A DNA stretch of 64,000 bases. Origin: Neoechinorhynchus agilis (taxonomy: Eukaryota; Animalia; Acanthocephala). The notes under the pieces are model-generated. The model was not told the DNA's origin. It saw only the letters and a list, made by a program, of their open reading frames with translations, and made no database searches. The stretch covers positions 10,865,480 to 10,929,479 of the forward strand of contig CM121342.1 in the NCBI GenBank assembly GCA_051530055.1. Reading direction: 5' to 3'. Positions 8,500 to 37,312 of this stretch are shown here, piece by piece (within the stretch, counting starts at the first letter, position 1; each line of letters starts with the position of its first letter). Made by a program: the position numbers and the translations under genes.

Positions 8500-11400
8500 A
8501 TCAGAAGGGAGCCTTGTGCTTGAGGCCTTGCACACATCTCTTCGGCCAACACCATGGATGGTAACAAATCGAACTACAGTTAAAAATTGCCCGCTAAGGA
8601 TGTATTGAAAATCAATAGAAAACGCCACGCAGTGCTAAAAGGTACGAGCGGACATATTCTAGCAACAACCTTGTGTTATTGAGTGATCGATAACGGCTGA
8701 ACAGTTGTGTGTGTTGGGGGGAATAATAAAAAACGGGTTTTCCAAAAAAAAAATGCGCACCAATGTTTTTGGCGGAGGGTGGCAAACGGCCACCCACTTC
8801 CCTGAGAATTCCCGTACATGAAGCGCGACAAACAGCCATCAATCACTGATTCAGGATCGAATCCCACTTCTCAGTTCTTGTTGGAAGGGTCCCTTTCTGA
8901 TGAAATCCCCCAACAGCTGACATCTTCATTCAAAACTCAACGCGAGTACCTAGCCCTTCCGGTCAAGAGAAGGCCGTATATACTCACAATCAAGTCAAAT
9001 CCGATTATGCCTAAGGACGTAATCTACAACCAAAGCGTTGCTCCGTGGACGCGCTCATTCCATAACGATGGAGTTAAACGAATTGATCGTATTACTTATT
9101 TCGGAGGTATTCTGAGAGTGTACCTAACGGACAGTATTTGGTTATCCAACTTGAAGGACTTTGTTAAATCCAAGCTTCCCAGGGATGTCTTCTCGGTGGA
9201 AGAGATTACTCAAAGGGTACAGTTCATGGCTAACGGTCTACAGCCCAATTTAGCTGCTGAAGACAAAGTAGAGTTCGAAAAACTTTTCAACGTGAAGATA
9301 AAATTTTTCCTCAACTCCAGAAGGTCTGGCACTCCTATATCGATAGCGATGGTGGAAGGATCCAGGCAAGTTAGGGATGACCTCTGTAAAAAAATACACT
9401 GTGCCTTTAATTGTTTTGCGATTCGATTCACACAGAAATCGGGAAGCCATCAAGATGACTATATTTTTTCCTCACTGCAACCTTTGCCACAAATGGGGAC
9501 ACTGGGCTCAACAATGTCCTAATTCGGAAACCCCGAAATGTGTTCACTGTGCTGAGACAGGTCATTCTGCTCAAAATTGCCCAAACAAGTCAATCAAAAG
9601 ATGTGTCAATTGCAATGGACAACACTCTGTATTTTACAAAGGATGTCCTGAATTCAAGAAGTATTGGAATTGGGCTCAAAACGGGCAGCCCTTTGCTAAA
9701 AAAAGCGATAGCGCCGGGTGGAGACCGGCTGTCGCAGCAAACTCGTTCGCAGTGCCTCTTCATAGAGCAACCCCCTTTTCAAAAGATAACGATCTTGAAG
9801 AGCTCGGACTCTAAAGACTCGCATCGCTTACCTCCATCGCAGTTGGTTACCATGGAAATTCTGGAGGAACGTTTAGAGGAGTCTTGTAACAAACTTCTAA
9901 CGGTCATGCAGGCGCGCTTCACTGAGGCCATCGTGGCTTTTGAGAGGAAGCTGAGTACACTCATTGGGAACTTGGTCAATCTTCCTGATTTGATTTCATC
10001 GAGTTTACCTAGTCAACGTGGTGCAAAGCTAAAAAGAGCGAATGCGACGGAAAAAAACTCTCATGGGGCCAAGAAACTCAATGTCGATTCTAGTATAAAC
10101 CACTCAGATATCGAGGACGTCGTCATGGAAGTCGAAGAAATCGACTCTGAATATGTTAACAGGATCATTAACACTCAATCCTCGCTCATTAACAACGGAA
10201 CTGCGGCCCTAATATCAGATGAAGTCGCCAGAATATGATAACTCGAAGGCACAGGTAATGGTGGGGGATCTCCGGGTGCTGCAATGGAATTGTGGAGGGG
10301 CGGCCAATCTTACCAGGCTCGCTCGGTTCACACCAGGTGTTTCCATCATCCTACTACAGGAAACGAAAAGTATTCACACTCTACACCAACTTTATAACTA
10401 TCTACCTCATCTTAACTGTTCAATGTTCTCCTCTTTTATTACTGGCCCATTCAGTCCCGCCTCACAAGGTCTTATTTCAATTTTTCATTCCTCATTAAAT
10501 CCCCAACTTATAGCCTCCTACACCTCACCGGAAATGTCGTACTCACTTTTTAAATTTCTCTTTAATTGGAAGTACCTCTCGATTGTTAATTTGTACATCA
10601 GACCAAGTTTTATTCATCGTCCATATATCAAAAACAAAATCAAATGGCTTCTCAATGCCAATATCGACTTTGTTGTGGGGGATTTTAACGACCCATCTTT
10701 AAAATGGTCCAGAGCCATTGTCAACGCAGTCAAACCTCTTTACTCTCTAACCCTCCCGAATACTCCGTCTTTCCACAATCTAGTATTAAATACACACTCG
10801 TTCTTAGATCTGATAATCTTTAAGAGATATCTTAACCTTTCAATTCAATTCGATCGTCAGGTGTCTCTCTTTGACCTCCTAGGGCATGATATCCTTATCT
10901 GGTCATTCGGTCCTATGAATGCACTCCGCAAATCATATCACATTTCTCCACTCAACGTGGCCTTTTTCCGTCTAATCAGCCAAATCGCTCTATCTTCGAG
11001 CACCTTACAATCTAATCGGTCATCCATTTTACCGTCTGTCAATAACATCCTCAATTTGGTTGCTAATACCTTTCTGTTTCGAACGGTAAAGGTTTTCTCT
11101 CGTCCTTACGAAAGTCGCTCTCTTCGCTTTCTCGGACGCCAACTTTTTCTGGCCAAACGTTCTGGAGACGTACTTCTCACGAAAATCTTATCTAGTCATT
11201 ATTGGGCAGCCCAATGTCGACAGAGGATGCAACAGAAAGCAAATCTTCTTAATAGCCTGAAACCCTTTTCCTCACATTGGTGGCACACTTTTCAAAGGAA
11301 GAGATACATACCATGGAAATCGAAAATCTCCGGCTGGTTAAAATCAACGTCTATAGACGATATTTAGCCATTTTTGCTTTTCATTCAGAGGGCTCTGTCA

Positions 11401-12780
11401 AGGATGCTTTACCCGTGACAATTTTTCGACGGGTCTTTGCCGGTCGTGTAGATATTTTATTAAGTGACATCCTAAAAGTATGGTCCGACAATCCGAAATT
11501 GGCATCCTCCAACTCAAGCTCAGGCACCAAAATCTTTACTTTACTTCCCCGGGACTGCATCCTAAGGCTGGCCGAATTAATGCTGAACTGCTCCCCTTAT
11601 GCTTGGAGAGAGATTAATGTGGCTCGGCGTATTTTTCTTATTAAAAATGGGAAAAAGTCAGTCTCTCAGCCTAAGGATCTCCGCCCAATTTCCCTACAGA
11701 ACCCCTTTGTAACCATTTACGAACGAGCCTTAGCACTTCGCTTGAGAGCCTTTATAACAGAAAATAGCTGCATATCGACTAATTGCCATGGTTTTCAAAA
11801 AAAGGGAAATCCGTACACTCTGCTTTAACCAATATTTACAATAACTTCACTAACACCAATCTACCCTTGAAAGCCATAATGGCTGTTGATCTATCTCAAG
11901 CGTTCGACAAGATATCTTTGTCTTTTATTATGGAGATATTAGAATTTTTTAGCGTCCCTCATAATTTGATCTCCCGAATTCACAATATTCTTTTTACCAA
12001 GTCCTTCTTTTACGAGGATGATGCTTAGAAATCAACCTATTACATGACCACGGGTGTCCCACAAGGTTCACCGCTTTCCCCGATCCTGTTTCTACTTGCT
12101 TCACAGTATATAGTTAAAAATTTCAAAACCCGTAATGTTTCTATAACCTGTTATGCGGATGACTTAACTTTCGTATTCTCTGCGCACAGAGCTTTCAAAC
12201 TCAAAAGTTTGATTGAGCAGTGCATCAACTACCTCAATGTAGTCTTACCTCGTATGAATTTATCCCTCAATCCCTCCAAATCGTTCTGTATCTTCAAGGT
12301 TCGCTCAGGTAGACTTCGATGGGATCTCAAATCATTTTTTAACAATCTAATGAACCCCTTGAATCAGAAGCGAGCGGATAATGCCAATACTCCACTAAAA
12401 TTACGCATTCTTGGACATACGTTAACGGTCAATCTGTCACCCAGAACCGATATCAATAAGTTGAAAAGGTTGCATGAAACTAGGCCTGAACTCGTTACAA
12501 GCGCAAGCTATTTGGAAAACCTGGTGTATCCCCGGCCTTGTCTTCTTTTCCAGAGGTCGCCCCCCCCGAACATAAGGCCTCCTTTATAGACGCCTTCACC
12601 CAGCACCTAGATTCCCTCCCATTTTCCTGGGCCGGAGAGTTAAAGAAGTTCTGTGAACCCAGAATTGGGCGATGGACAACATGACAGGTATTCTCTCACC
12701 AAACCGTTAATCTGTTAGATAAATAAGTCACGATTGCGCTCTAAAAACCATGATAAATAAATATATAATATAATAAAAAA
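8500..12780 (+). mobile_element. APE-type non-LTR retrotransposon, near full length, with frameshifts (LINE copy 1)
   Basis: ORF1 with three CCHC knuckles (CNLCHKWGHWAQQC, CVHCAETGHSAQNC, CVNCNGQHSVFYKGC) and a coiled coil. ORF2: LQWNCGG, LLQET, VVGDFN, LRPISLQN, DLSQAFD, GVPQGSPLSP, YADD. A-rich tail ending at 12780. The 5' boundary is approximate. Confidence 0.92.
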
Positions 12781-15059: not shown

Positions 15060-18000
15060 GTCTCCGGTGGATTTGTTTGCAACCCTCCGCATACGTTTGA
15101 GCGTTGATGAACGCATGACTCGATTTTTTACCCTTTTAAACGCAATGGGTTTTTACGTTTCAATTTATGGCAGCCAACAGCGCACACTATGCAATCTTGT
15201 AACTCGTGCGAACAAAATGGTTTTGCAAAGGATTCAAGACCACCTGACCCACCCGTTGAGATGCTAAGGAACTTTCAAAATGGGTTGGTTAAACCCCTGC
15301 GTGTTAGTGATCTTTTGAGTGATTGTGCCCCGGTTTCTATTTCCGAAAATACATCTCGTTCCGCCGTTGTTAGCCCAAAAGGTATAGCCCACCCCTTTCG
15401 TTGAGAGAATTATATGCTTAAAATTGATAAGAAGACATGGGAATTCGCACCCCAACATCCCTATCAAAAACATTTTTCCCAAAATTTCTGAGCCCTTCTG
15501 GGCTCGGTAACAATATTATTTGCAACATTAAGAAATCATTCAACACCAAATTTGCGTTCATCTTCGTTTTCTTTCACATAAGAGGTAAAGAATTATTTGT
15601 GAAAATGTTGGACAATTTGAAAATCAAATTTATAGATAAATCAAGAACAGTAACGTTTCTAATGTTTAGCCTGGCGAAATAGAAAAGACCCACGGCTTTA
15701 AAGCAATCAAGTACCTGTCCAGATTTCCGAACTCGCAACCCTACTCTATTCTTTGCTCTGTGCCAATCAATATTGCTGAACGCATAAGTGAATCTGGTCT
15801 TGGACTATATTCATATTGGGTCACCTTTTCTCTAATAAGCCGGTCTATTTATGATTTTAATTTGACAATATGTCAAAAATGTGCTCGATGAGGTCACAAA
15901 GCGTCTTCCTGTAGTGATGAACCCCGATGTTTGATTTGTGCTGGCCCGCATTTGAAGTAGGATTGCATAAATGACGACGGCGTGAAATGTGCTTATTGCT
16001 CTAGGCCTCACCCCGCCTTTTCGAAATCTTGCAAAGCAGCTGGAAGTTATTTTGAGGAATCATCCGGCCCCAAGCCCGACTCCCATCCAAACTCTGGAGC
16101 ACCAGCGCATATCTTTGCCAATCACTATCATACAATAAATAGGGGCAACCCTCCTACCCCCTCACAACCACAATGCTATCACCCCAAGGTTTTGGGGCAG
16201 GTAGATCATCGAGAAAGTAATCCCCCACGTCTATCCAACCCTTAATGACGAATTTCCCCCCCTAGCGATGCAAACGTAGTGGAGGAAAATGAAATGCTGA
16301 AAAAAGTGATAAAATGGATAATCGAATACTCAGCTCATTTTGCAATCATCACGACACAGGCAACCCCGGTTTCCCCTACAGAATCTATTAGATATGATAA
16401 AGGCGTCCGCTTTCCTCGGTAAGCCGAAGAGAGCTTACACTCTCCTTCCGATAGAGATGTGTCTCCTAAGTGGAGTAGAAAGCTGGACCTGGATGAATAG
16501 AGGCCCCCGCTTCTCTTTTCTACAATAATAACAGAACCAATTAATATTATGTGCCTCCGAGAAGTTGGCCCATTGCCATATATCGTCTCTACACAATACA
16601 AAGGTTTTTATTAGCTCCATCGACTGCTCTAACCAATCAATACATTGGTTTTTCCTGGTGGTCTACAAACCTTTGTTAGGGCTGATCTTAAACCAACTTT
16701 GCTCTTATCTTTAAAAGATGAGCTGTTTAAAATTCAATTTCTCTCGATATCGAACCCCTATCGGCTCAGATATCCTCAACTCCACCCTACTCTTATCATT
16801 GCGAATATTTACATACAATCAGGCTGTGTAACGAAGTTTTTAAAAAAGTTTCGCAGTTTGTTATTATTTTGGAACTCGGATCTAATAATCGGTGATTTTA
16901 ACACGAACTACTTGTCTGCCATGCGACCTTATTTTAAAGATCACGAATTCATGCTACCTAATTTTCCCTCGTTCCATAACATGGCACGTAATCGACACTC
17001 ATTTATTGATGGAGCTTTTGTAAGCAAATCCTTCCATATCAACCTTTACCCCAGAATTCAAGTTCAATCTCAATTGCGAATGGGACACGATCTTATCATT
17101 TTTTTTCAGGGTGCGCACTGAAGGAAACTTTTTTATGTTAAATAAAATATGTTTAATTTGGAAATATTACAAAATCTCACGTCTATGGTGAGTATCAGTC
17201 TCTCGTACTTCAACAATAAAGTATTAAGTTCTGCAAAAAGAAATCTAGTCTTCTCCAATTTTATTCGAAGGCCTCCAGTTTCCAGAAAAGCGAATCTCAT
17301 ATACAAACAAGCGATGGTTGCTAACCTTCACAACGATGTTCATTTACACCAGCTTCTTATGAAAAAGTTTTTCACTACTAAATTTTACGAGAGTATTGAA
17401 CGGGACAGGATGTTTTTATTAAAACAGGCAATTTTAGGGAAAACATACTGGGCTACGATTTTGAACAGGCGCTTCGTTAGTTGGAAAGCTAAAGCAACCA
17501 ACTATATTGCCTCTAAGACATACCCGACTGTGGTCGAAGAAATTTTAACTGCACACACTTTTAGTGCCTGCGCCCACCCACCTATCACCATTCTTCGTAA
17601 AAAGAACTTTACTTGGCGCTTTACGCTAGAGTAATTTTTACATGCTTCAAAACCCCACCTTCCTACGCTTACAATGGCAGTTCTGTCTCCCTTAAAATCT
17701 TTTCTGGAGTCAGTACTGAAAATAAATCCGCATTTTTTAACAAATTTTTTAAATCAAAACTAAACTTAGCTGATTTGTTAAACATCAATTTTGTTAAGAA
17801 AGTTTTTATTCCTAAATCAAAGGTTTCTATCTCTCGCCCTAATCATATTAGAATAATTGCAATCCAAAATCCCATTATCTCCTGTCTGGAGGGAATCATT
17901 AACTCTAAATTCTTAAATTTTTTGTTGAAGCGGTGCATCATCCCTCAATATTTCCACGGGTTTGTTCGTCGATGGGGAGTTCATTCCCTATTAACGGATC

Positions 18001-18780
18001 TCTACCTCTTAAATACGGCAACAAATACAAAAAAAGTTCTGATTCAGCTGGACTTAAATAAAGCATTTGATGCCCTGTACAGGACCCTTTTATATGAAGC
18101 CTTTACATTCTACAAGATCCCCCTTAATATTATTTACAAAATTCAACATTTAATCGAATCCAAATCCTTCTATTATGAAGCTGATCCATGTAACACGAAA
18201 TTCTCTTCTCGCTATGGTGTTCCTCGAGGTTCTCCATTGTCGCCCATTCTCTCCCTGATTGCTATGTTATTTATTTTTAAAGACATCAAGGGCTACCATT
18301 TTATTCATCCAGTTATTTACGCGGACGACATTTTTCTCTTTTGTAAAGCTCGCTTCAGTGGTTTCATTGTTTCTAAACTCTCTTCTTACATCGAGAACCT
18401 TGCATCTGCTCTCTGTAAAGGAAATCTTATTTTGAATCTTAACAAATCTTTTATAATTCTGCTCACTAAATCTTACGGCCCAGGGAAATCTCTTGCCCTT
18501 CTATTTAGCTCATCCCCATTTTATCAAACTTTTGCCATCAAAAACCACCCTCGTATGCTGGGAATAGACTTCCCTTCTACACAAAACCGAATTTTTATTA
18601 ATAAGTCTCCGAAGAGCGCTCAAGGCATCTCCTGGTTCCTTTCCCAACCCTTGGCATCGTTGATTTTATAGGGAGCAGCTTCCTTAATCCCAGCTCCTTT
18701 CCCTCGGCAACCCTATCTGTAATTCAGGTTAGCTGCTCTCTCCAAATAAGCCTTCAGGGCCTTGTAAAATTCTCAATCCT
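15060..18780 (+). mobile_element. APE-type non-LTR retrotransposon, decayed (LINE copy 2, related to copy 1)
   Basis: Knuckles CQKCARxGHKASSC, CLICAGPH, CAYCSRPHPAFSKSC; APE IIANIY, IIGDFN, PSFHNMARNRHSFID; RT IRIIAIQN, DLNKAFD, GVPRGSPLSP, YADD. Confidence 0.9.
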
Positions 18781-18784
18781 TGTA

Positions 18785-19092
18785 TTGAGAACTCGGAATC
18801 TGGATGCTAGATCACAATATGAAGACAGAAACAACGAGCCAAGTGAGAAGACCGAGGAAACGCCTAACGCTACCGAGACACCAGGCCTCTCCATAGGTTC
18901 TTTTTCAATCACGAAATGGGGGGTTTTGCGCATTCATGGGCCCGTCAAATCACGTTGTTGGGATCTGGTCAAATCCCGCGATCGCTTCAACCGGCAACAT
19001 AAAAAAAATCCGTCGACGCTCCCCGATGACGCCGGCAGTCTTCCTTCCGCTGCTGATCTCGTACGTGTTCTTTCCATGAACATTCTGAAACG
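18785..19092 (+). mobile_element. 5' fragment of a CRE-like element (zinc-finger region)
   Basis: SFSITKWGVLRIHGPVKSRC...ADLVRVLSMNILKR parallels RSFKLTNLDVLSVHCPRDLRC...PDIVRFLPRNVLKP at 39300-39520. Confidence 0.65.
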
Positions 19093-20005
19093 CCTGCTCT
19101 CTGTAAACTCTATGTCCACATTTTGGATTCTGCATTGTTTCAACCCAGTGTCTTCTTCTGGGAATCCTTGCATCAATATCGTGATATGTATGCATAGATA
19201 ATTCGCCACTTAAAGAAAAATTGTTCGACCATGGGGTTCTGTTCGGGATTGATTGCGCGTTCGTTAATGAATAATCAGTTATCAAATCGAGCGAACCACT
19301 TTGTATGTTTTCAATCGGATTGAGACGTGTTGTTGGAAGTTCGCTTTGTCCTGGTAAAGCACAGAATTGCGGCATGCGCCTTAAATGATAATTTGAACTA
19401 TATTCATATGATTGTTCTTGAGTTAAATTTATTGGATGTATGTTTTGAAGATAAGGCAATTGAGGTGTTGATTGTTGAGAAATTAAATAATGATGTTGTC
19501 TCAAATGTGGATTAAGGCTAAATCCACTAGGTCGATTAACTGGCCGTTGAGATCGGAGTAGAGAATGACGACATAGATTTTGATCAAGCGCATGTGGATA
19601 TCAAGACGAATCCAAGAATGGATGAGTTATATGATGTAAATTTTGTTGTGACTGTGATAGTCTATAATGAGGCCAGTTTGAGCCATTTGAACGTTGATAA
19701 GTATTGTACTGATGGAATAAATCAGTTTGTGAATGTCGAAACTGCGATGAGTGTTCGCCCGTTTGTATAATCTCTTTTTGACTCCGATCTAAACCACGTG
19801 GATCGACCGGATTGGACACAATGGGAAAATCATATAGAAGTCGCTGATTAAGATTCACTTGTGTCATTTCGTTGTTGTATGTTGTCCGAGATTTGTGCGC
19901 TATATGTTGGTCGTGTATTTCGGTCGCTCATTCCAATCACCATAGTGCAATTTCTGGGTTTTTTAGCAGTAGAAAGTTGGAATAAAAGGAGATTGTATTA
20001 TGCGA
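19093..20005 (-). repeat. 913-bp duplicate of 25103-26015 (5' part of the TBP-fold gene, without the TBP domain)
   Basis: Identical ORF translations offset by 6010 bp; sharp junctions at cctgctctctg and gtattatgcga. Confidence 0.95.
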
Positions 20006-20519
20006 TCTCCTGTGAATTTGTTTGCCACCTTCCGGCAACGAATGAACGTTAGTGAGCGTGGCACTTGATTGCACTGATCGGTCAATCTTATTGAAAAACC
20101 ATTTTTATATGCTGCCAGCTGTAAAAGTCGATTTCCCTATTTTCAATAATGAATATTTTCTTAATTTAGCACCTCAGAAAACGACTAAAATCGCAGTTAA
20201 TTTAAAAAGACGTCTAGCAAACGGACTAAGTGGCCACTTTCCTCATTTAATTTTTCTTTTAAAAATGGCGACAAATATTTAAACCCGCGCCAAATAAATA
20301 AATGGGTCAGAATTCTGTCGTTTTTATACCCCCTCCCTAGTCGCCGATCGTATTGTATCGCTGCAATCTTGTTCCTCGCATCGCTCTGTTTTGTTCTTCG
20401 CTGAATCGAGCGACTTCTCATCAGTTAGCTTGTCCCTGACTAACGGATTCACAAGATGATGGTCATTCAGCAAGGTTAAAATATTGAAGTAAATTTCAAA
20501 TGTGCTATCTGAAATCTTG

Positions 20520-20910
20520 TTTTTGTATGCATCTGATTTAGATGGGTCCTCTGAATATCTCTTTGTATTTGCATGCTTTATGCTGGCATCAAATCATCGT
20601 AGCCGTGCTTGCTGCATTTTACTGGTGATGGGTGCTACTCCATATCGATTCCGAATTTCTTCATTTCGGACGTGATCCTTGAGGGTGAAACCACCGTTTC
20701 CACGGCGGCTAGTCGACATTCAGTGTGCTTCGTTTTCGGCCAACACTCTGCACCGTATAGGGTTACGGGTTCGATCACTGCTCGGTGAAGCTTGGTATTC
20801 GACGATCACAATTGACGCATGTCGAGTTATCCAATTGGCCCAAGCGGATGATATTCTCGCAGACAGTGACCAGATCGTTTTTCATCGTTTGCCAAGAGTA
20901 TTCTGTTTTG
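20520..20910 (-). mobile_element. RTE-clade LINE 3' fragment
   Basis: Minus-strand frames give CDRRIP, VIEPVTLYGAECWP and TLKDHVRNEEIRNRYGVAPITSKMQQARLR. Confidence 0.8.
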
Positions 20911-20929
20911 CCTTTGATTGCACCTAGTC

Positions 20930-21030
20930 CGGTTGCACCAGATCTTTTTATTGCACTGTATTTTCCGGTTTCACCAGATCTTCTGATTGCATCATATTTT
21001 TCGGTTTAACCAAGTTCTTCTGATTCCAAA
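20930..21030. repeat. About 36-bp tandem repeat, about 3 copies
   Basis: caccagatct...attgca...atttt.cggttt recurs. Confidence 0.7.
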
Positions 21031-21234
21031 GAATGACCCACATTAATTGTTATTTCCTTTGGTATTTTTGAAACCCGTTTTCTATCGCTGCAATCTTGTT
21101 CCTCGCATGCATCGCTCTGTTTTTTTCTTCGATGAATTGAGCGGCTTTGGAGCGAATGGTTGTTTTCTTACCTTCGTGCCGGGGACGGATAGAGCGCATC
21201 AATTGACGTGGGTAATATTTTAAATTATTGGAAA

Positions 21235-21935
21235 CGTCCTCTGATTCCAAATATGGTCTTTTCGCCGTAGCTATCACGGATCATGAGTTCTATGAACTTC
21301 GCAAATATAAACCGTAGGACCTCCAACCAGTGCTTCACGGTTCATGAGTTGTATGAACGTCGCTTAAACTCGATCGTTGGACCCATTTCGATCCGCTGGT
21401 TCCAAATATGTTCTTCTTTTCGCCATTGCTATCAAGGTTCGTGAATCCTATCAACTTCTCTAAAACTTTACTGGTGGACCTCTAACTAGTGTCTGTCTAG
21501 TCTATTTCGATCCGCTGATTCAAAATATGGTTTTTTTTCGCCGTAGCTATCGCGTTTCATGAGGTATATGAACCTAGCTTAAACTTGACCGTTGGACCTC
21601 TAAGTAGTGTCCGTCTAGTCTATTTCTATCCGCCGATTCAAAATATGTTCTATTTTCGCCGTAGCTATCACGGCTCTTGAATCCTATCAACTTCTCTAAA
21701 ACTTTACCGTCCGATTTCTTAGTGTCCGTCTAGTATATTTCGACCCGCTGATTCCAAATATGTTCTTATTTTCGGCGTAGCTTTGACGGTTCGTGAATCT
21801 TATCAACTTCTTTTAAACTTGACCGTTGGACATCTAAGTGGTGTCCCCATAGTCCATTTCGACCCGCTGGTTCCAAATATGTTCTTATTTTCGCCGTAGC
21901 TATTTCGGTTCGTGAATCCTATCAACTTCTCTAGT
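21235..21935. repeat. Diverged tandem array, unit about 115-119 bp, about 6 copies
   Basis: Anchor (c/a)caaatatg at 21247, 21402, 21521, 21639, 21754, 21873; shared ttttcgccgtagctat and cctatcaacttc. Confidence 0.9.
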
Positions 21936-23885: not shown

Positions 23886-24697
23886 CGTGTAGATATTCAT
23901 TTATAAATTAATTTGGATGGTGAAATAAAGGAAATTAAGAATTTATTTATCAGAATTTTCGACCAATGCGTTGGTCTTCTTCAGTGATCTGAAACACACA
24001 TGCACATTAGTCCGGATTGAGTTTCCACCCTTTCACCACAGCGTTAAAGGGTACACGTAAACTAAGTGTGTAGTCCGCTTTGTGATGCGTGAACGTGTTG
24101 CCGTGTTCAATCATGATGGCCTCCATTGTGATTCGGTCACGTTTGTTGTCACATATCGCCATTATTTCAGTGGCATCAAGATCAATTCGATGTTTGTTTT
24201 CTTTAACATGATGAACTAATGCTGAGTTGAGATCGGTCAACTTGCTGATGGCCGGTCTGTGTTCGGTCAACCTTCTTCGGATGTTATTGGTTTGTCCAAT
24301 ATATGATTGGTTGCAATCGTTAAAGGGTATCCTGTGCACACACCCGGAGACCTCGTCAACCCTTCTGGGTCGGAACATGCCATCTAAGGTTCTCCCTTTT
24401 TTGTTAAATGCCGTTTTTTCTGTGAGTCCTGCTGCTTTATGAGATTTTGCATATTCGTGTTCCACTGATCGTCTACATAAGGGATCTCAATGAATCTTTT
24501 TTGGACTTCCTCGATATTCCGATTGTTCAATACCATCCAAATTAATTTATAAATGAATTTCTACACAATAACCCAGCAAATTTATGGTGAGTCTGCTTTA
24601 CAACATGCACGTCTACTGGAAAAACCATCTCTGAGATCGATACACAATAAAGCAACATCAGAATTTCTCCGAACCTGTAGACTTTATGTGTTTCACC
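23886..24697 (-). mobile_element. Penelope-like element: GIY-YIG 3' part, pseudo-LTR, and an inverted 5' pseudo-LTR/ORF start
   Basis: IEIPYV and GCVHRIPFNDCNQSYIGQT..RRRLTEH on the minus strand; plus strand 24550-24695 gives MNFYTITQQIYGESALQHARLLEK...EFLRTC; ccatccaaattaatttataaatgaat is present in both orientations. Confidence 0.88.
23949..23988 (-). ncRNA. Minimal type I hammerhead ribozyme (Penelope pseudo-LTR)
   Basis: ATCA-CTGAAGA-A-GACCAA cgca TTGGTC-GAAA-ATTC-TGAT; palindromic stem III AAUU; UUC cleavage triplet. Confidence 0.8.
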
Positions 24698-25877
24698 GCG
24701 CTGCACGGTCCGCCAAATCACGAGTCTGATCTAGCGTTCCGGGGCAATAAATGACAGCGCGACCAAATCGATAGAATGATACTTTTCCTGGGGGCGCATG
24801 ATGTAATAATGTTAAAATCCTTCCTTGACTATCCATCTTGGAATTCGTGGTTTTATTGGCCAGTTCACGAATGTTGAGCTCTTCGAAGATATTCAACATT
24901 GCGATGGTGTTATATATCGTTATTTGGAATTGAGGATATTCTTGAGGGACTGCTGGTAAAAATAGCCGTGAATTGTCTTCAATTTGAACTTCGGATTCAT
25001 TTATGGGCTTCAGAAATAAACATCTTCGCCTCCTCCTTTCTTCATTAACTAATTGAATTTGTCGCAGAATCGCGCTTGTAACTGTAACATTTCGAATATT
25101 CACCTGCTCTCTGTAAACTCTATGTCCACATTTTGGATTCTGCATTGTTTCAACCCAGTGTCTTCTTCTGGGAATCCTTGCATCAATATCGTGATATGTA
25201 TGCATAGATAATTCGCCACTTAAAGAAAAATTGTTCGACCATGGGGTTCTGTTCGGGATTGATTGCGCGTTCGTTAATGAATAATCAGTTATCAAATCGA
25301 GCGAACCACTTTGTATGTTTTCAATCGGATTGAGACGTGTTGTTGGAAGTTCGCTTTGTCCTGGTAAAGCACAGAATTGCGGCATGCGCCTTAAATGATA
25401 ATTTGAACTATATTCATATGATTGTTCTTGAGTTAAATTTATTGGATGTATGTTTTGAAGATAAGGCAATTGAGGTGTTGATTGTTGAGAAATTAAATAA
25501 TGATGTTGTCTCAAATGTGGATTAAGGCTAAATCCACTAGGTCGATTAACTGGCCGTTGAGATCGGAGTAGAGAATGACGACATAGATTTTGATCAAGCG
25601 CATGTGGATATCAAGACGAATCCAAGAATGGATGAGTTATATGATGTAAATTTTGTTGTGACTGTGATAGTCTATAATGAGGCCAGTTTGAGCCATTTGA
25701 ACGTTGATAAGTATTGTACTGATGGAATAAATCAGTTTGTGAATGTCGAAACTGCGATGAGTGTTCGCCCGTTTGTATAATCTCTTTTTGACTCCGATCT
25801 AAACCACGTGGATCGACCGGATTGGACACAATGGGAAAATCATATAGAAGTCGCTGATTAAGATTCACTTGTGTCAT
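24693..25877 (-). CDS. Divergent TBP-family (TRF2/TBPL1-like) protein with a Q/S/P/H-rich N terminus, truncated after one TBP repeat
   Basis: The last 78 aa (FQITIYN...LNIRELA...N...P...FGRAV...DQTRDLADRAAR, 24929-24696) fit TBP repeat 1 without gaps by eye. One in-frame TGA (25613-25611) would be removed by a candidate 81-nt GT-AG intron at 25617-25537. Confidence 0.7.
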
Positions 25878-26385
25878 TTCGTTGTTGTATGTTGTCCGAG
25901 ATTTGTGCGCTATATGTTGGTCGTGTATTTCGGTCGCTCATTCCAATCACCATAGTGCAATTTCTGGGTTTTTTAGCAGTAGAAAGTTGGAATAAAAGGA
26001 GATTGTATTATGCGAGTATAAACAACGAAAATAACATGAAGCCGTTGCAGGTCCCGGATTGGCCCATTTGCTTAAATATATTTTCACACCTGGGCATGTG
26101 ATTTGCCGGAGTGTCATAAAATCTATTGTAACTTTTTAAGTTAAAGCGAACAATGGATCCGCGAATTAATTGGAGCCGGACACTATTCGAATACGAGAAT
26201 TTTTTCTGGATCTGTCTCAGTTGTTTGTTCTTACGAAAGTGTCGATTTCGAGGACGGAACTTGGTGCTGTCGGCGTATCCAAAAGGGCACGCTCGCTTCT
26301 TGCGCGGGGATAACTGGTATGGACAAGGGGAATCCAACTGTTTAATTAAAACAAAGCATTGCGATGGCTGTAATCGGTGTTGACG

Positions 26386-26416
<31 letters not shown>

Positions 26417-26451
26417 TAAAGTGAAGAAATTAATTTAAGCGCGGGTGAACG

Positions 26452-28230
26452 GTGGAAGTAACTATGACTTTCCCTAAAGCTATTAACAACTTGATTGAAC
26501 TTTCGAAGTCCATAGCTATTTCCCCTCCACCGGGGACACGTGCTTCCTCCGCTTCAGATTCGCCTCAACAAAATGACAACACAGTTCAACAGCTTGATAA
26601 AGTTCAACAGCTAACAAGCAATGACGCTCATCCAATGAACAACAGCCAACATCATCAAACCCGTGTTAACGATTCAATGTCGTTGATTAGTAACGCAAAT
26701 GCAGCAGGAAACAACCCAGCGAAAAGCAAAAGTCCTGAACAAGTCCGCCGTGAATGCAGAATGGTCTACGGAATTTCTCAAGAACTTGGACTCAGGTGCC
26801 CCGAGTGCGATCTAGTGACGGTTGGAAAGTCAAGGGTCAAACTATTTGTTGAACATCAATCCGCCGTTCACCTACACGATTCTATTATATGTACCTGCCT
26901 AGTCTGTGACGACTATCAATGCAATGAATCGAGGTCAATAGGCAATCACCTCAATAAGTGCCAACAGCGATTCCCGCACAAAACAAGCTCATAACAGTGT
27001 ACTCGGCGGAAACGCTGCAGTGAAGCAAAACTCGGCAATAATGCAATACACTGATCCTGGAAGCCTAGTTTTCTGCATCATCTGTCGCCTCAAAATTTAT
27101 GGCCTTGGACAATTCAATTTTGTTATGGAGCATCTTAAAGACGCCCATCAATTTGAGAATATTGAATTTGATTGCGACAATTGCTGCAATCATCGCCCTT
27201 CCTCCTTCATATTAGCACGAGGACACTTCAATCATTGTATTAGGAATTACGTAGCAGGAGTTAATATATCAAAAAATCTCTGACAATCTGGTCAACCTCA
27301 GAAGCACATGTAGTACAGGATCTAGAGCAAAGCGATCCGTCTCTAAAGCGAGTGTCAGGCCTCTTTTATGGAGCTATATTTTGCCAACGTTCGCCCAACA
27401 AGATACGCCGCAAAGATGGAGATTTAAAGGATTTAGCTGAGAAGGACGCGCAGCTGACGAGAAAACACTGAAGAACGAGTAATTATATCTCCTAACCTAC
27501 CACATGGACCTATGTACAATGACGCTCAGTACAATGGCAATGCATCAACCTCCGAAATTGCCACAGTCAGGCCTGCCTCAACTTCTATGCCTACCCCAAC
27601 ATCGATGCCTATCTCAGCTTCGATATCTACCTCAGGAACTTGTAAATTGAGTGGGCGCGTAAACCTGTAACAGGTACCTACACCCCATATTGGGGCGTGC
27701 GCGTTTGCAGCACAGGAGGGACACGAAATTCTTCTGAATTGCCTTCAACGACAGGATATTAATCCACGCTATCGTCCTTTTCTGAACAATGAGTCGGAAG
27801 AGCTACGCAACCATACTGGTCCAATGAATCAGGAATTTATCGAATCAATGAGTGCGCGATATCTTTCGTACTTGAAATGCGGGCGACAAGGTTCTCCCGA
27901 ATGCCCGGCGATGTCCCGCGCGCGCAGTCTTGGTCTCAAAATTATAAAGCTGAAGAAAAATTCAACAATGGCACTGGCAACCGCCGTCTTTCACGTTCAC
28001 AAGAACCCTACACAATGGAGGAGAGTAAAAGACCGCATCTTGGACTCTGTTTCACTTCAGCGCCAATACTTTGAGCATGTTGTTAAAAGGCTTCCTGGCG
28101 CAAATCTCACATTAAATGGCATACTGGATGCTCTCAAAAAGGACAACGAACATTCAGTTCACTTCATCCTGTGGGCCGCAGCGACTGCCTATTAATGCGA
28201 CTTTGTAGCTTATACTCCAAGCGATGATGT
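26452..28230 (+). mobile_element. Decayed 5' part of a probable RLE-type retroelement: two C2H2+CCHC zinc-finger pairs and an OTU-like segment
   Basis: CPEC..H...H/CLVC..H...C and CIIC..H...H/CDNC..H...C; then LGLKIIKLKKNSTMALATAV...WRRVKDRIL...ILWAAATAY. Confidence 0.5.
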
Positions 28231-31666: not shown

Positions 31667-34600
31667 ATGTCAACGCATCCATCAGAGCCGGATTTGGAGA
31701 AGTTAAAAGCGGACGTGAGTTCACTTCGAGAGGAGGTGAGTGCTTTTGCGAAGGGACATGCTGATTACGTGGATAAATTGAACGTCGTCGAGGGACTCAA
31801 GAAGCGTTATCAGATGCAATGGAACAAACTGAAAGCTCGATTGGACCAAGTGGAACACAATTACAACGACGAAGTAACGAAACGAACACGATCACATGCA
31901 AAAACATCGCCAAAATTAATTAAAATCAGTGGATGACCAGGGGGCGGGGTTAGGTCAATGTTAATTCTTTCGTATCTAGAACGTCATAACGCGACCTATC
32001 TTTTTGTTTGGGTTATCCGCCGAAATGTCACGGACGATCTTGAATTGAGGCATATAAAAAGCATTTTAGACAGAGATGGCAATTACTTGGTTCGTATTCG
32101 CGATACACTTCCTCGACCACCGGAAATTTATCTCAAAATAGTCCTTGGGCAAGTGCCTCTGTGCATTTTGGACAACATGGAAAAGTGGAAGTACAAACAG
32201 GACTACGAATGGTTCAAATTGGTCGTCAGTCTCATCATTTTTGTTTGCTCATTCGTGTTGCTTTTCGTTCCATCGCGAGCGTTAGCCGATTCTTTATTCC
32301 AACTTCTATTAGTTTGGTACTATTGCACACTCACAATCCGTGAGAGCATCCTTGTAACAAACGGATCAAGGATTAAGCTCTGGTGGCGTGTTCATCATTT
32401 TTTGGCTACTGTTCAAAGTTCCATATTCCTCATTTGGCCGTCGTCAAACAGCTACGAACACGTTCGATCACCAATGTTCATGTACTGTGCTTACATCACG
32501 TTTGTTCAAACTCTTCAGTTTTATTACCAAAAGGGTCTTTTGTATAGACTCAGAGCTCTTGGAGAAACTAAACCCATGGATATAAGTTTAAAGTGAAGCT
32601 TTTGTGGAACGGACTCAAATTACCTGGCGAATTCTAAAATGAAACGGGATTTATACACCCACACAATTAAATGGAAATATTGAATTTTTTCTATGTTGTT
32701 CTTTAGGGAAAAATGCAAGCTTTTTACGAAAAATTTGCAGTGTAGAAAAAATTGAGAGGCGAATTCTAAAATGAAATCGGGTTTTATACACCCACACATT
32801 TAAATGGAAATACTGAATTTTTTCTATGTTGTTCTTTGGAGAAAAAGCTTTTTACGAAAAATTTGCAGTGTAGAAAAAATTGATTAGCGAATTCATAAAT
32901 GAAACGGGATTTATACACCCACACAATTAAATGGAAATACTGAATTTTTTCTATGTTGTTCTTTAGAGAAAAATGAAAGTTTTTTACGAAAAATTTTCAG
33001 TGTAGAAAAAATTGAGAGGCGAATTCTAAAATGAAACGGGATTTATACACCCACGCATTTAAATGGAAATACTGAATTTTTTCTATGTTGTTCTTTAGAG
33101 GAAAAGCCTTTTACGAAAAATTTGCAGTGTAGAAAAAAATTGAGAGGCGAATTCTAAAATGAAATCGGGTTTTATACACCCACACATTTAAATGGAAATA
33201 CTGAATTTTTTCTATGTTGTTCTTTGGAGAAAAAGCTTTTTACGAAAAATTTGCAGTGTAGAAAAAATTGATTAGCGAATTCATAAATGAAACGGGATTT
33301 ATACACCCACACAATTAAATGGAAATACTGAATTTTTTCTATGTTGTTCTTTAGAGAAAAATGAAAGTTTTTTACGAAAAATTTTCAGTGTAGAAAAAAT
33401 TGAGAGGCGAATTCTAAAATGAAACGGGTTTTATACACCCACACATTGAAATGGAAATATTGAATTTTTCTATGTTATTCTTTGGAGAAAAAGCTTTTTA
33501 CGAAAAATTTGCAGTGTAGAAAAAATTGAGAGGCGAATTCTAAAATGAAACGGGATTTATACACCCACGCATTTAAATGGAAATACTGAATTTTTTCTAC
33601 GTTGTTCTTTAGAGAAAAAGCCTTTTACGAAAAATTTGCAGTGTAGAAAAAATTGAGAGGCGAATTCTAAAATGAAACGGGGTTTATACACGCACACATT
33701 TAAATGGAAATATTGAATTTTTCTATGTTGTTCTTTGGAGAAAAAGCTTTTTACGAAAAATTTGCAGTGTAGAAAAAATTGAGAGGCGAATTCTAAAATG
33801 AAACGGGATTTATACACCCACGCATTTAAATGGAAATACTGAATTTTTTCTATGTTGTTCTTTAGAGGAAAAGCCTTTTACGAAAAATTTGCAGTGTAGA
33901 AAAATTGAGAGGCGAATTCTAAAATGAAATCGGGTTTTATACACCCACACATTTAAATGGAAATACTGAATTTTTTCTATGTTGTTCTTTGGAGAAAAAG
34001 CTTTTTACGAAAAATTTGCAGTGTAGAAAAAATTGAAGCGAATTCTAAATGAAACGGGATTTATCCCGCATTAAATGGAAATACTGAATTTTTTCATGTT
34101 GTTCTTTAGAGAAAAAGCCTTTTACGAAAAATTTGCAGTGTAGAAAAAAATTGAGAGGCGAATTCTAAAATGAAATCGGGTTTTATACACCCACACATTG
34201 AAATGGAAATATTGAATTTTTCTATGTTATTCTTTGGAGAAAAAGCTTTTTACGAAAAATTTGCAGTGTAGAAAAAATTGAGAGGCGAATTCTAAAATGA
34301 AACGGGATTTATACACCCACGCATTTAAATGGAAATACTGAATTTTTTCTACGTTGTTCTTTAGAGAAAAAGCCTTTTACGAAAAATTTGCAGTGTAGAA
34401 AAAATTGAGAGGCGAATTCTAAAATGAAACGGGGTTTATACAGGCACACATTTAAATGGAAATATTGAATTTTTCTATGTTGTTCTTTGGAGAAAAAGCT
34501 TTTTACGAAAAATTTGCAGTGTAGAAAAAATTGAGAGGCGAATTCTAAAATGAAACGGGATTTATACACCCACGCATTTAAATGGAAATACTGAATTTTT

Positions 34601-35907
34601 TCTATGTTGTTCTTTAGAGGAAAAGCCTTTTACGAAAAATTTGCAGTGTAGAAAAAATTGAGAGGCGAATTCTAAAATGAAATCGAGTTTTATACACCCA
34701 CACATTTAAATGGAAATATTGAATTTTTTCTATGTGGTTCTTTATAGAAAAATGAAAGCTTTTACGAAAAATTTGCCGTGTAGAAAAAATTGAGAGGCGA
34801 ATTCTAAATGAAACGGGGTTTATACACGCACACACATTTAAATGGAAATACTGAATTTTTTCTATGTTGTTCTTTGGAGAAAAAGCTTTTTACGAAAAAT
34901 TTGCAATGTAGAAAAAATTGAGAGGCGAATTCTAAAATGAAACGGGATTTATACACCCATACAATTAAATGGAAATACTGAATTTTTTCTATGTTGTTCT
35001 TTAGAGAAAAATGAAAGCTTTTTACGAAAAATTTGCAGTGTAGAAGAAATTGAGAGGCGAATTCTAAAATGAAACGGGATTTATACACGCACACACATTT
35101 AAATGGATATACAAACCATTGCCCACCAAAATATTTGGATCGTGGTCTCTTTTCTCGAGAAAAGATTGTGAATTATTATGGGTAAATCCTTTTTTGGTAC
35201 AATGAGATTAATTGTACAGTGTCATCTTGAAATTTCATGTTGTTTCTCAGGAAATTTCTTGAATATGCACGATAAGGTTAAATAGTAAATGTACATTATG
35301 TGAATTTCTAATAGAAATAAACATAAGCGTTTGTATCGATTTCCCCTTTTTGTTGGATTTCTCAAAATTATTGACGGTTTTATTAAGCACATAGGAAATG
35401 ATTTATTCGCCGACCCCTGGCAATAGTTTTGCTAATAAAGTGCAAAGGAGAAATATGAAAAGTGCGCAATAAACTCACTTTAAAGGAGAAACTTTCTGAA
35501 CTAAGCGCCAACCACAAATGCTTCCGATAGAAGGTCTACATACCTGGATGCTACGAGGTCTTGGATTTCTTGTGCCATTTCTGTTTATCGGTTATGCCCT
35601 TCAGCTTTACTTTGCATTTTGGTTGGTTCAACTGTACCTGAGGCCGATTTCCGATTGCTGTCACGAGTGGCACATTCTCGCCTCTGCCATCTTGATGAGT
35701 GTATTCTTCGTTGGAAATGCATTGACGGCGTGCGTCGTGCTGGTGACAAAGTTCAGACAGCAGACTGCTGAATATTCGTGGATGGTTAGTAAATACGAAG
35801 GATTCGTATCAACGATTAGATCATTTGCTGAACAAATGGAGACTGATTTTGTGAGCAATAACCGATTCACCGGTTTAATCGGTCAGAGAAATGAATTCGG
35901 CTCGTGA
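31667..35907 (+). CDS. TMEM120: TMEM120/TMPIT protein, multi-exon
   Basis: N-terminal coiled coil; YLKIVLG, KWKYKQDYEWFKL, VWYYCTLTIRESILVTNGSRIKLWWRVHHFL, FYYQKGLLYRLRALGE; last exon GLHTWMLRGLGFLVPFLF follows the satellite. Confidence 0.93.
32624..35110. repeat. AT-rich satellite, unit about 125-132 bp, about 19 copies, in a TMEM120 intron
   Basis: gcgaattc anchors at about 32629, 32761, 32889, 33021, 33149, 33278, 33409 and onward; blocks repeated at offsets of about 389 and 752 bp. Confidence 0.97.
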
Positions 35908-36879: not shown

Positions 36880-37312
36880 TAAAAAAGAGAGGCAGGGAAT
36901 GTCAAAAACTATCACACGTTGATCTTATCGGGTGGAATCCGAAGCTTCAATCTGTAATCCGGCTTGTTTCCATCAAAAATGGATGACGACTGGATATACA
37001 CAGCTTCCATGACCACACGACTGAATCGATCGTGACTTCGTAATAACACTTGCGTGTTATCAAAATCGATATGATGTCCAGTATTCACAACGTGTGAGAC
37101 CACTGCAGAACTCAAGTCATTCTTTCTGTTTATCGATCGCCTGTGCTCCTGAATTCTCCTATTTAGATCGTTCGTTTGTCCGATGTAGACCTGACTACAT
37201 TCACTACATGGGATCTTATATACTGATCCAGATTGAGGCTCGCCTTTTTGTTGGGACAAAGCGGTGTGATCAACGTGTGATAGTTTTTGACATTCCCTGC
37301 CTCTCTTTTTTA

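Follow-up and report, generated by a model that had tools for sequence, protein, structure and literature searches.

Does the TBP-like gene at this locus of Neoechinorhynchus agilis (Acanthocephala; chromosome CM121342.1) encode a working core-transcription factor? The original prediction, drawn from a 64-kb stretch of DNA (64,000 nucleotides, hereafter the window), described a fast-evolving paralog of the core transcription machinery, or a TBP captured by a transposable element (TE) or a virus. Our analysis indicates that the locus is very probably a dead, truncated copy, accompanied in the window by a shorter identical fragment, of an N. agilis-specific gene family in which the intact members have a very divergent, TRF2-like core of the TBP type.

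The locus and its reading frame

The features of the locus are listed in Table 1. The longer copy (copy A) is 90% identical in nucleotide sequence to positions 9701-11208 of a paralog locus, L001. GenBank annotation at the locus consists of just a 233-aa hypothetical protein, ACOME3_007185 (P0001). The peptide on which the prediction was built, FQITIYNTIAMLNIF...DLADRAAR, is encoded as described (24929..24696, minus strand), followed by a stop codon at 24695-24693. The 315 residues of the frame upstream of the domain are rich in Q, S, P, H, and N (41%), as had been noted for Q, S, P, and H, but L and R occur just as often.

Table 1. Positions in the window of the TBP-related copies, their lesions, and a neighbouring retroelement remnant
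Feature	Position	Strand	Remarks
Copy A of the TBP-related gene	24687..26157	-	~280 nt of 5' flank, then the gene as far as mid-helix H2 (repeat 1)
Reading frame of the original prediction	24693..25877	-	395 codons, one internal and one terminal TGA
TBP-type repeat 1 fragment (78 aa), S1 to mid-helix H2	24696..24929	-	60% identity to P0123 repeat 1
In-frame TGA, nonsense mutation at codon 89	25611..25613	-	Arg in L001 (CGA), Arg also in P0123
Site of 27-nt (9-codon) in-frame deletion	25330..25337	-	Compared with both types of paralog; P0002 has FLHAVEPMQ here
Junction, 19-nt deletion making a frameshift stop (GCG CGG TGA)	24687..24697	-	Homology ends at 24687
Copy B, 913-bp fragment	19093..20005	-	100% identical to 25103-26015, same nonsense codon
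GIY-YIG ORF remnant (putative Penelope-type endonuclease)	24007..24465	-	Pfam GIY-YIG 23.1 bits, cut-off 22.6

When the 78-aa segment was compared with the TBPL1 profile by hhalign, the alignment to repeat 1 of TRF2/TBPL1 was reproduced in the predicted register, although the match was weak for the window alone (E=9.3e-4, probability 23%). The match to the Pfam TBP family was below threshold (E=0.14, 12.5 bits, profile positions 2-77 of 85), and the window ORF alone had no TBP match in Pfam or PDB sequence searches. The A-P-P motif leaves the N-to-P spacing, read originally as that of TRF2, ambiguous; the TRF2 spacing is obtained through the first P (hhalign, TBPL1), and the TBP spacing through the second (phmmer, TBP). 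A compressed repeat that had been proposed upstream of this segment gave no TBP signal against the TBPL1 profile (hhalign probability 0.3%, E=0.19); the true second repeat of intact paralogs lies downstream of repeat 1, not upstream. By sequence, the window segment on its own is only marginally TBP-like and falls short of every curated threshold, with a TBP assignment that is transitive via the paralogs, and the identity of the pseudogene can be proved solely through the intact ones.

An intact paralog family

The search for intact paralogs with a second repeat that accompanied the prediction was successful. Two intact, intronless genes for proteins of 671 aa, P0123 and P0126, are present in the same genome. 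Each encodes a fast-evolving, low-complexity N-terminal region followed by a two-repeat TBP-family core at the extreme C-terminus, with repeat 1 of P0126 as similar to the window segment as that of P0123 (60% identity). Both repeats of P0123 lie in one ORF, ending ...LYPIFKSVEL. The core is complete in P0123 and P0126, and also in L001 once one frameshift is corrected; the ending LYPIFKSVEL was found in frame +2 past the stop of the P0002 gene model, which places a 1-nt frameshift in L001. The P0002 frameshift, in ACOME3_007929, is located in a short C/G run (GCCGG).

All family members are currently labelled "hypothetical protein." An exhaustive phmmer search returned no relatives outside N. 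agilis, and word-index homology searches returned nothing past four N. agilis proteins. Judged by these searches, the gene family is specific to N. agilis. Two further candidates, P0124 and P0125, were rejected, their phmmer matches being tandem-repeat artefacts. TBP and the family genes go unmentioned in the N. agilis genome paper and in its supplement, and the rotiferan gene-loss paper is silent on TBP and TRF2.

Assignment to the TBP family

P0123 matched the Pfam TBP family (PF00352) in two stretches with E=5.5e-9 and 36.2 bits, well above the gathering score (22.9 bits). In a phmmer search of PDB with the same protein, the best 35 matches were all TBP, headed by A. thaliana TBP (E=8e-4, residues 5-181 of 185). 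The frame-corrected L001 domain had no TBP match in Pfam or PDB (phmmer), and was matched by the TBPL1 profile in hhalign with a probability of 95% (E=3.7e-8, 169 columns). Significance was reached solely by P0123 and by profile-profile comparison.

An AlphaFold model built from the family sequences alone was uninformative (pLDDT 36). With TBPL1 sequences in the alignment, pLDDT rose to 58, with values of 67-88 in repeat 1 and poor prediction of residues 91-141. Repeat 1 was modelled with the element order S1-H1-S2-S3-S4-S5-H2, and the top 44 PDB matches of this model in Foldseek were all TBP, with E-values as low as 9e-7 and a TM of about 0.53; the model is not independent evidence of the fold because TBPL1 sequences were in its alignment. 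From the comparisons of sequences and profiles, we conclude that the intact members carry an extremely divergent two-repeat TBP-family core.

Retroelement neighbours and copies

At the end of the frame, where the original prediction placed a Penelope junction, a GIY-YIG ORF follows, with a score just above the Pfam cut-off. This ORF contains the motif CxxC...YIGQT..R.L..H, typical of Penelope endonucleases, and is flanked by 35-nt inverted repeats (24532-24566 and 23887-23921, 34/35 matching). There was no RT between the ORF and the gene fragment in the 220 nt upstream of the ORF, and no hammerhead ribozyme was found by Rfam. Copy B adjoins a LINE (RT ORF 17613-18671, plus strand).

A TBP-like gene that was cargo of a mobile element, or captured by a virus, and that spread with the element would explain copies in TE-rich DNA. 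The family has at least 5 copies or fragments, every one in repeat-rich DNA, its genes are intronless, the window copy adjoins the GIY-YIG remnant and a LINE, and a pair of 959-bp direct repeats, sharing 99% identity, lies on either side of P0126. However, those repeats have no TG..CA (LTR) ends and no gag, pol, or transposase between them, and they are not colinear in L003; no transposon protein was found in the gene unit. The known copies are all on one chromosome, which is one of three large scaffolds; neither a unit with TE hallmarks nor its dispersal was seen. Homology between subfamilies reaches only about 100 nt beyond the ORF on either side, and the 5' boundary of L001 is explained by an LTR-retrotransposon insertion. 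Long intronless ORFs are, moreover, usual for host genes in the window. The domain scores best against metazoan TBPL1, and viral TBP-like folds matched worse than cellular TBP (best E=5e-4 compared to 9e-7). We consider mobile cargo or capture, the second reading offered by the original prediction, to be quite improbable, and return to a decayed copy of a host gene.

Disabling lesions and selection

Three lesions separate copy A from its paralogs (Table 1). At the third, GTGAAACACA (24696-24687, 10 nt) matches L001 11228-11237, beyond the 19-nt deletion, which brought "gtgaaa" beside ...GCGCG. When homology past 24687 was sought with further deletions allowed, the alignment score was below that of shuffles. 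Because homology ends at 24687, the window lacks the last part of helix H2 and the whole of repeat 2, which tblastn did not find anywhere in the 64 kb. The conserved domain is therefore not covered by an uninterrupted ORF (the TGA, two deletions, and the truncation all intervene), and 78 aa of repeat 1 are what is left of the two tandem repeats. The window locus is a pseudogenised, 3'-truncated copy that cannot yield a working factor.

In the TBP domain, dN/dS was 0.11 for P0123 compared to P0126, 0.25 for L001 compared to L003, and 0.21 for the window compared to L001, with an overall range given as 0.11-0.28. The TBP domain is under purifying selection. Values for the N-terminal region were 0.45-1.2, with about 1.2 for the window copy compared to L001.

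The disruptions and the duplicate fragment could have arisen in assembly, with the true locus being an intact third family member. For the N. agilis assembly, DNA of about 50 pooled worms and of single females was read by Illumina and R9.4 Nanopore sequencing and assembled with MaSuRCA (PMC12690905). Copy B is 100% identical over its 913 bp and has sharp ends, and the P0002 frameshift lies in its C/G run. With pooled worms, the 100% identical copy B could be an assembly artefact or a haplotype variant, and the same may hold for some of the lesions. On the other hand, the nonsense change is a substitution rather than a homopolymer error, MaSuRCA consensus is Illumina-based, three independent lesions are present and a further 320 nt or so of coding sequence are gone, and the N-terminal dN/dS of the window copy fits relaxed constraint. 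An intact gene behind these lesions is accordingly very improbable, and true decay is preferred.

Least credible of all is a functional, fast-evolving TRF2 paralog at the window locus itself, in which an 81-nt intron (25617-25537) removes the stop and a downstream exon reached through the splice donor cg/gtgaaa completes the domain, both as originally suggested: GT...AG dinucleotides bound the segment, its length is a multiple of three, and BRAKER called the 233-aa gene here, but the paralogs read through the "intron" as ordinary coding sequence with homologous residues and CGA (Arg) at the TGA codon, "gtgaaa" is homologous to the paralog codons GTG AAA CAC (V-K-H; GTGAAACAC is coding in L001), the intact family genes are intronless, and the 64 kb hold no second repeat. 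The proposed intron, splice donor, and upstream compressed repeat are refuted. The claim of a divergent core-transcription paralog survives for the family, whose intact members supply a TBP-family domain closer to TRF2, but not for the window locus as a working gene.

Affinity to TRF2 and to TBP

In phmmer comparisons the family scored 26-37 bits to most TBPL1 sequences and 9-21 bits to TBP, with best TBPL1 scores of 33.7 and 37.1 bits compared to best TBP scores of 21.4 and 9.9 bits (best 120 of 746 matches listed in the TBPL1 search; TBP references were the human and yeast cores and the A. thaliana core from the PDB match). The ranking was not uniform, as some TBPL1 sequences scored below TBP.

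Residues were mapped by hhalign and hmmalign in place of MAFFT, which put the S1' regions of the family and of TBPL1 out of register. In yeast numbering (hmmalign), F99 is replaced by H/G, F116 by Y, and F190 by S. The fourth position, F207, is kept as Y in P0123 and F in L001. Among other DNA contacts, N159 is K or R and T215 is N. The stirrup E186-P-E188-L189 reads E-P-E-I in P0123 (the YEPE(I) motif), and E186 is R in L001. TRF2 is defined by the replacement of 3 of the 4 TATA-intercalating Phe (human F193, F210, and F284) with F301 retained (PMC4180970), and the family shows this pattern of three replaced and the fourth retained. Metazoan TRF2 cores usually share 40-45% identity (PMC3142196); the family falls far below that range, with 20-24% identity to 21 TBPL1 sequences. 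Given this low identity and the TBPL1 sequences that scored below TBP, descent from TRF2 rather than from TBP is likely but not proven.

Possible function of the intact proteins

The intact proteins would be expected to form a TBP saddle, like TRF2. Since 3 of the 4 Phe and the repeat-2 Asn and Thr contacts have been lost, TATA recognition by the family is not expected, and these proteins would skip the TATA box. The YEPE(I) motif of P0123 suggests that they could nucleate a pre-initiation complex via TFIIB, and probably TFIIA, and they may act as an alternative core-promoter "system factor." No such role is open to the window copy, which has lost everything past mid-helix H2 at a breakpoint beside the GIY-YIG retroelement remnant.

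P0123 and P0126 might also be an acanthocephalan-specific, fast-turnover offshoot of TRF2, dedicated to the core promoters of a special programme such as germline genes or heterochromatic, TE-rich loci. Drosophila TRF2 acts with Moonshiner at piRNA clusters, which is a precedent for this reading, and if it were true the birth and death of copies would amount to an ongoing conflict. A link to the expression of TE-rich loci or to piRNA had been raised in the original prediction; no supporting evidence was found, and we regard this special-programme reading as improbable. It is hinted at just by the location of every copy in TE-rich DNA and by a PAZ/Piwi gene at a distance of 6.5 kb from P0126, and in a genome this compact such proximity is weak evidence.

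Acanthocephalan genomes are tiny and gene-poor (46 Mb, with ~45% of metazoan BUSCOs missing; PMC12690905), so a multi-copy, extremely divergent factor of the TRF2 type whose core is constrained adds, modestly but genuinely, to the picture of a remodelled basal transcription machinery in Acanthocephala.

Comparison with known TBP-family proteins

With TRF2 (TBPL1, TLF) the family shares a two-repeat TBP core in which the same three Phe positions are replaced and the fourth is F or Y. P0123 also preserves the TFIIB-stirrup YEPE motif, and long non-conserved extensions are carried by invertebrate TRF2s as well. Unlike TRF2, which keeps the central repeat-2 Asn (yeast N159), the family has K or R at this position and N at T215; its H1' and S2' are also set apart by about 9-10 additional residues. 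Some 485 aa of low-complexity sequence, part of it internally duplicated, precede the core, which lies at the very C-terminus, and the family is multi-copy with members that are decaying.

The likeness to TBP lies in the score of P0123 above the Pfam threshold, in significant PDB matches that are all TBP over the full core, and in a conserved repeat 1 Asn equivalent to N69. The family differs from TBP in the missing intercalating Phe and repeat-2 contacts and in an identity of about 17-19% to TBP in structural alignments.

Paralogs of the TBP family define alternative transcription "systems," and the lineage-specific TRF1 and TRF3, the latter close to TBP, each revealed specialised germline or developmental programmes. 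Insect TRF1, vertebrate TBP2/TRF3, and cestode TBP2 are precedents for taxon-specific duplication of the TBP core with germline or tissue-specialised use (PMC3142196; PMC13134418). Divergence is far greater in the N. agilis family, which is TRF2-like, than in insect TRF1 and vertebrate TRF3. The N. agilis genes add a new, lineage-specific, and very divergent branch to the known TBP/TRF2 family, and what the window holds of it is a wreck.

Results

Judged from the window sequence by itself, the resemblance of the fragment to TBP is only marginal. TBP was absent from the Pfam and PDB search results for the window's 273-aa ORF. The isolated 78 aa matched Pfam TBP with E=0.14, spanning profile positions 2-77 of 85, and hhalign against a 14-sequence TBPL1 (TBP-related factor 2, TRF2) profile gave E=9.3e-4 and a probability of 23%, in the register of the original prediction.

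Features of the window and copies of the gene family in N. agilis
Feature	Location	Strand	Remark
Reading frame of copy A (main window copy)	25877..24693	-	395 codons, single frame
Internal TGA, codon 89 of copy A frame	25613-25611	-	
Terminal TGA of copy A frame	24695-24693	-	
78-aa TBP-like peptide	24929..24696	-	quoted in the original prediction
GIY-YIG ORF, 3' of copy A	24465..24007	-	Pfam 23.1 bits vs cut-off 22.6
Second Penelope-type GIY-YIG ORF	36912-37259	-	
28S rRNA fragment	26321-26512		192 nt
C2H2-like Cys/His-motif ORFs	26452-26994, 27020-27283	+	after 28S fragment
Satellite array	32626-35112		period ~130 bp, copies 89-94% identical, AT-rich (33% GC)
Shorter, degenerate tandem array	21335-21933		
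P0123	CM121342.1 3.36 Mb		intact
P0126	CM121342.1 8.24 Mb		intact
P0002	CM121342.1 13.68 Mb		frameshifted
Window copy A	CM121342.1 10.88 Mb	-	dead
Window copy B (19093..20005)	CM121342.1 10.88 Mb	-	fragment

A word-index search placed the window in Neoechinorhynchus agilis (Acanthocephala; GCA_051530055.1, chromosome CM121342.1) and returned the window's own gene model (P0001, 233 aa) and an 84% identical paralog (P0002, 431 aa) at locus L001, which has 90% nucleotide identity to the window from 26157 to 24697. Past the gene-model stop of L001, another frame reads ...LWANKHPITRK...TRKLILNGRDFDDISQACRILYPIFKSVEL*, which resembles TBP repeat 2; joining it needs a 1-nt frameshift at GCCGG. Exhaustive phmmer against 1.84 billion representatives recovered P0123, a 671-aa protein whose cluster mate is P0126, and no relatives outside N. 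agilis with E<1e-3. P0123 and P0126 are intronless N. agilis ORFs on one and the same chromosome as the window. Because P0123 has both repeats in a single frame and a terminus, ...LYPIFKSVEL, identical to that of L001, the frameshift interpretation was confirmed. The family is unmentioned in the N. agilis papers.

P0123 exceeded the Pfam TBP gathering score (E=5.5e-9, 36.2 bits vs 22.9, two stretches). Its best 35 matches in a PDB sequence search were all TBP and covered positions 5-181 of the core (185 aa), with A. thaliana TBP at the top (E=8e-4), and the frame-corrected L001 core aligned with the TBPL1 profile over 169 columns (hhalign, E=3.7e-8, probability 95%). With 60% identity between the window fragment and repeat 1 of P0123, the assignment of the fragment to the TBP family, made via the paralogs, is secure by transitivity.

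AlphaFold on an alignment of family sequences only gave no usable model (pLDDT 36). With 21 TBPL1 sequences added, pLDDT was 58, and repeat 1 was predicted at 67-88 in the order S1-H1-S2-S3-S4-S5-H2. The top 44 Foldseek matches of this model in the PDB were all TBP (E down to 9e-7, TM ~0.53). The model is consistent with the TBP assignment, but is not independent of the input alignment.

Copy A is a decayed and truncated pseudogene with four lesions. The internal TGA stands where L001 has CGA (Arg) and P0123 an Arg residue; the 81-nt intron proposed earlier is contradicted, both kinds of paralog having coding sequence homologous to the entire stretch. The second lesion is a 27-nt deletion near 25334. 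Third, a 19-nt deletion after ...GCGCG juxtaposes GTGAAACACA (24696-24687), giving the stop GCG CGG TGA. The 'gtgaaa' at the ORF end had been considered a possible splice donor, which it is not, because its decamer encodes V-K-H in L001 (11228-11237) and was moved there by the deletion. Fourth, homology stops at 24687, and none was found past this point by shuffle test. Repeat 2 was not found by tblastn across the 64-kb window. No TBP signal came from the "weaker, compressed repeat" reported upstream of the domain (hhalign probability 0.3%); the segment is a linker that the family conserves, and in intact genes the true second repeat is found downstream. Q/S/P/H/N make up 41% of the 315 residues N-terminal to the 78-aa domain, in which L and R are just as common.

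Copy B is 100% identical to 25103-26015 over 913 bp, including the nonsense codon, and adjoins a LINE. Its ends are sharp, with no visible poly(A) or target-site duplication. We read copy B as the product of a very recent duplication or rearrangement, or else as an artefact of assembly or haplotype; the assembly is a hybrid from pooled worms.

The window also encodes host genes (DEAD-box helicase, subtilase/proprotein convertase, UFD1, kinase, and ABC ATPase) and LINE reverse transcriptases. The GIY-YIG ORF 3' of copy A lies between 35-nt inverted repeats (24532-24566 and 23887-23921, 34/35 matching) and has no attached reverse transcriptase, a layout odd for a Penelope-like element. The eukaryotic 28S fragment (Rfam RF02543, 146.7 bits, covering model positions 2121-2337) is separated from the 5' end of copy A by about 160 nt; 26321-27283 (+) resembles the 5' junction of an R2-type (rDNA-specific) retroelement, copied with its 28S flank.

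All five identified copies are on one 16.4-Mb scaffold of a 46-Mb genome with three large scaffolds. P0123 (locus L003) and P0126 (locus L004) lie within a duplicated, rearranged segment of ~7.6 kb with 90-96% identity. In both, a 424-nt stretch within the low-complexity N-terminal region is duplicated internally in tandem (L003 and L004 10083-10950; 93-94% identical), and most of their additional length comes from this duplication.

Nei-Gojobori dN/dS was calculated for paralog pairs, separately for the TBP core and the N-terminal region. Core values were 0.11 (P0123 vs P0126), 0.25 (L001 vs L003), and 0.21 (window vs L001); N-terminal values for the same three pairs were 0.45-1.2. These ratios indicate purifying selection on the core throughout the history of the family. 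It is a genuine protein family and not a chance ORF. Synonymous divergence between the window copy (24696-25877) and L001 (10001-11208) was 0.055 in the N-terminal 315 codons and rose to 0.27 across the 78 codons of the domain, an unevenness that points to a mosaic origin or to gene conversion.

Capture of a TBP by a TE or virus, also raised in the original prediction, found no positive evidence: the 959-bp direct repeats around P0126 (L004 5691-6649 and 12316-13273, 99% identical) have ends unlike those of LTRs, with no TE protein encoded between them, and viral TBP-like models were poorer matches (best E 5e-4). The functional roles suggested earlier for the window locus, expression of TE-rich loci among them, likewise lack support. 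At the 3'-repeat junction, a 32-nt exact copy (L004 12284-12315) of gene-internal 11812-11843, absent from L003, looks like templated filler of a DNA-level rearrangement. On the 5' side, the point where window-L001 homology stops falls at an LTR retrotransposon that lies upstream in L001. Immediately upstream of P0002, LTR-retrotransposon ORFs encode gag (zinc knuckles) and integrase (L001 5722-9120); downstream (17323-21311), a 173-bp unit is repeated in tandem at least 23 times. A PAZ/Piwi-domain gene (L004 1872-3482) precedes P0126 by 6.5 kb and is not part of the segment that L003 and L004 share by duplication; at about one gene per 3.4 kb in the genome, this proximity is probably coincidence.

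Discussion

Within the well-known TBP/TRF2 kind of protein, the N. agilis family is a new member, lineage-specific and unusually divergent.

In pairwise phmmer, most TBPL1 sequences outscored TBP, the best values being 33.7 and 37.1 bits for TBPL1 and 21.4 and 9.9 bits for TBP. The N-to-P spacing, earlier read as TRF2-length, does not tell the two apart, since either P of the A-P-P motif can pair: hhalign with TBPL1 takes the first (TRF2 spacing), and phmmer with TBP takes the second (TBP spacing). By hmmalign in yeast numbering, N69 is retained, F99 is H/G, F116 is Y, F190 is S, and F207 is Y/F. Loss of three of the four Phe is a hallmark of TRF2 (PMC4180970) that the family shares. Together with the P0123 Pfam match and the L001-TBPL1 alignment, this pattern bears out the recognition of a TBP-fold domain that is TRF2-like and highly divergent. 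At the TFIIB-contacting stirrup, P0123 reads Y-E-P-E-I and L001 reads Y-R-P-E-I in place of Y-E-P-E-L. Derivation from TRF2 is likely, not proven. In contrast to TRF2, the repeat-2 Asn (N159) is K/R, T215 is N, and ~9-10 additional residues separate H1' from S2'. Metazoan TRF2 cores are typically 40-45% identical to each other (PMC3142196), whereas the N. agilis family is only 20-24% identical to TBPL1 cores, far under that range.
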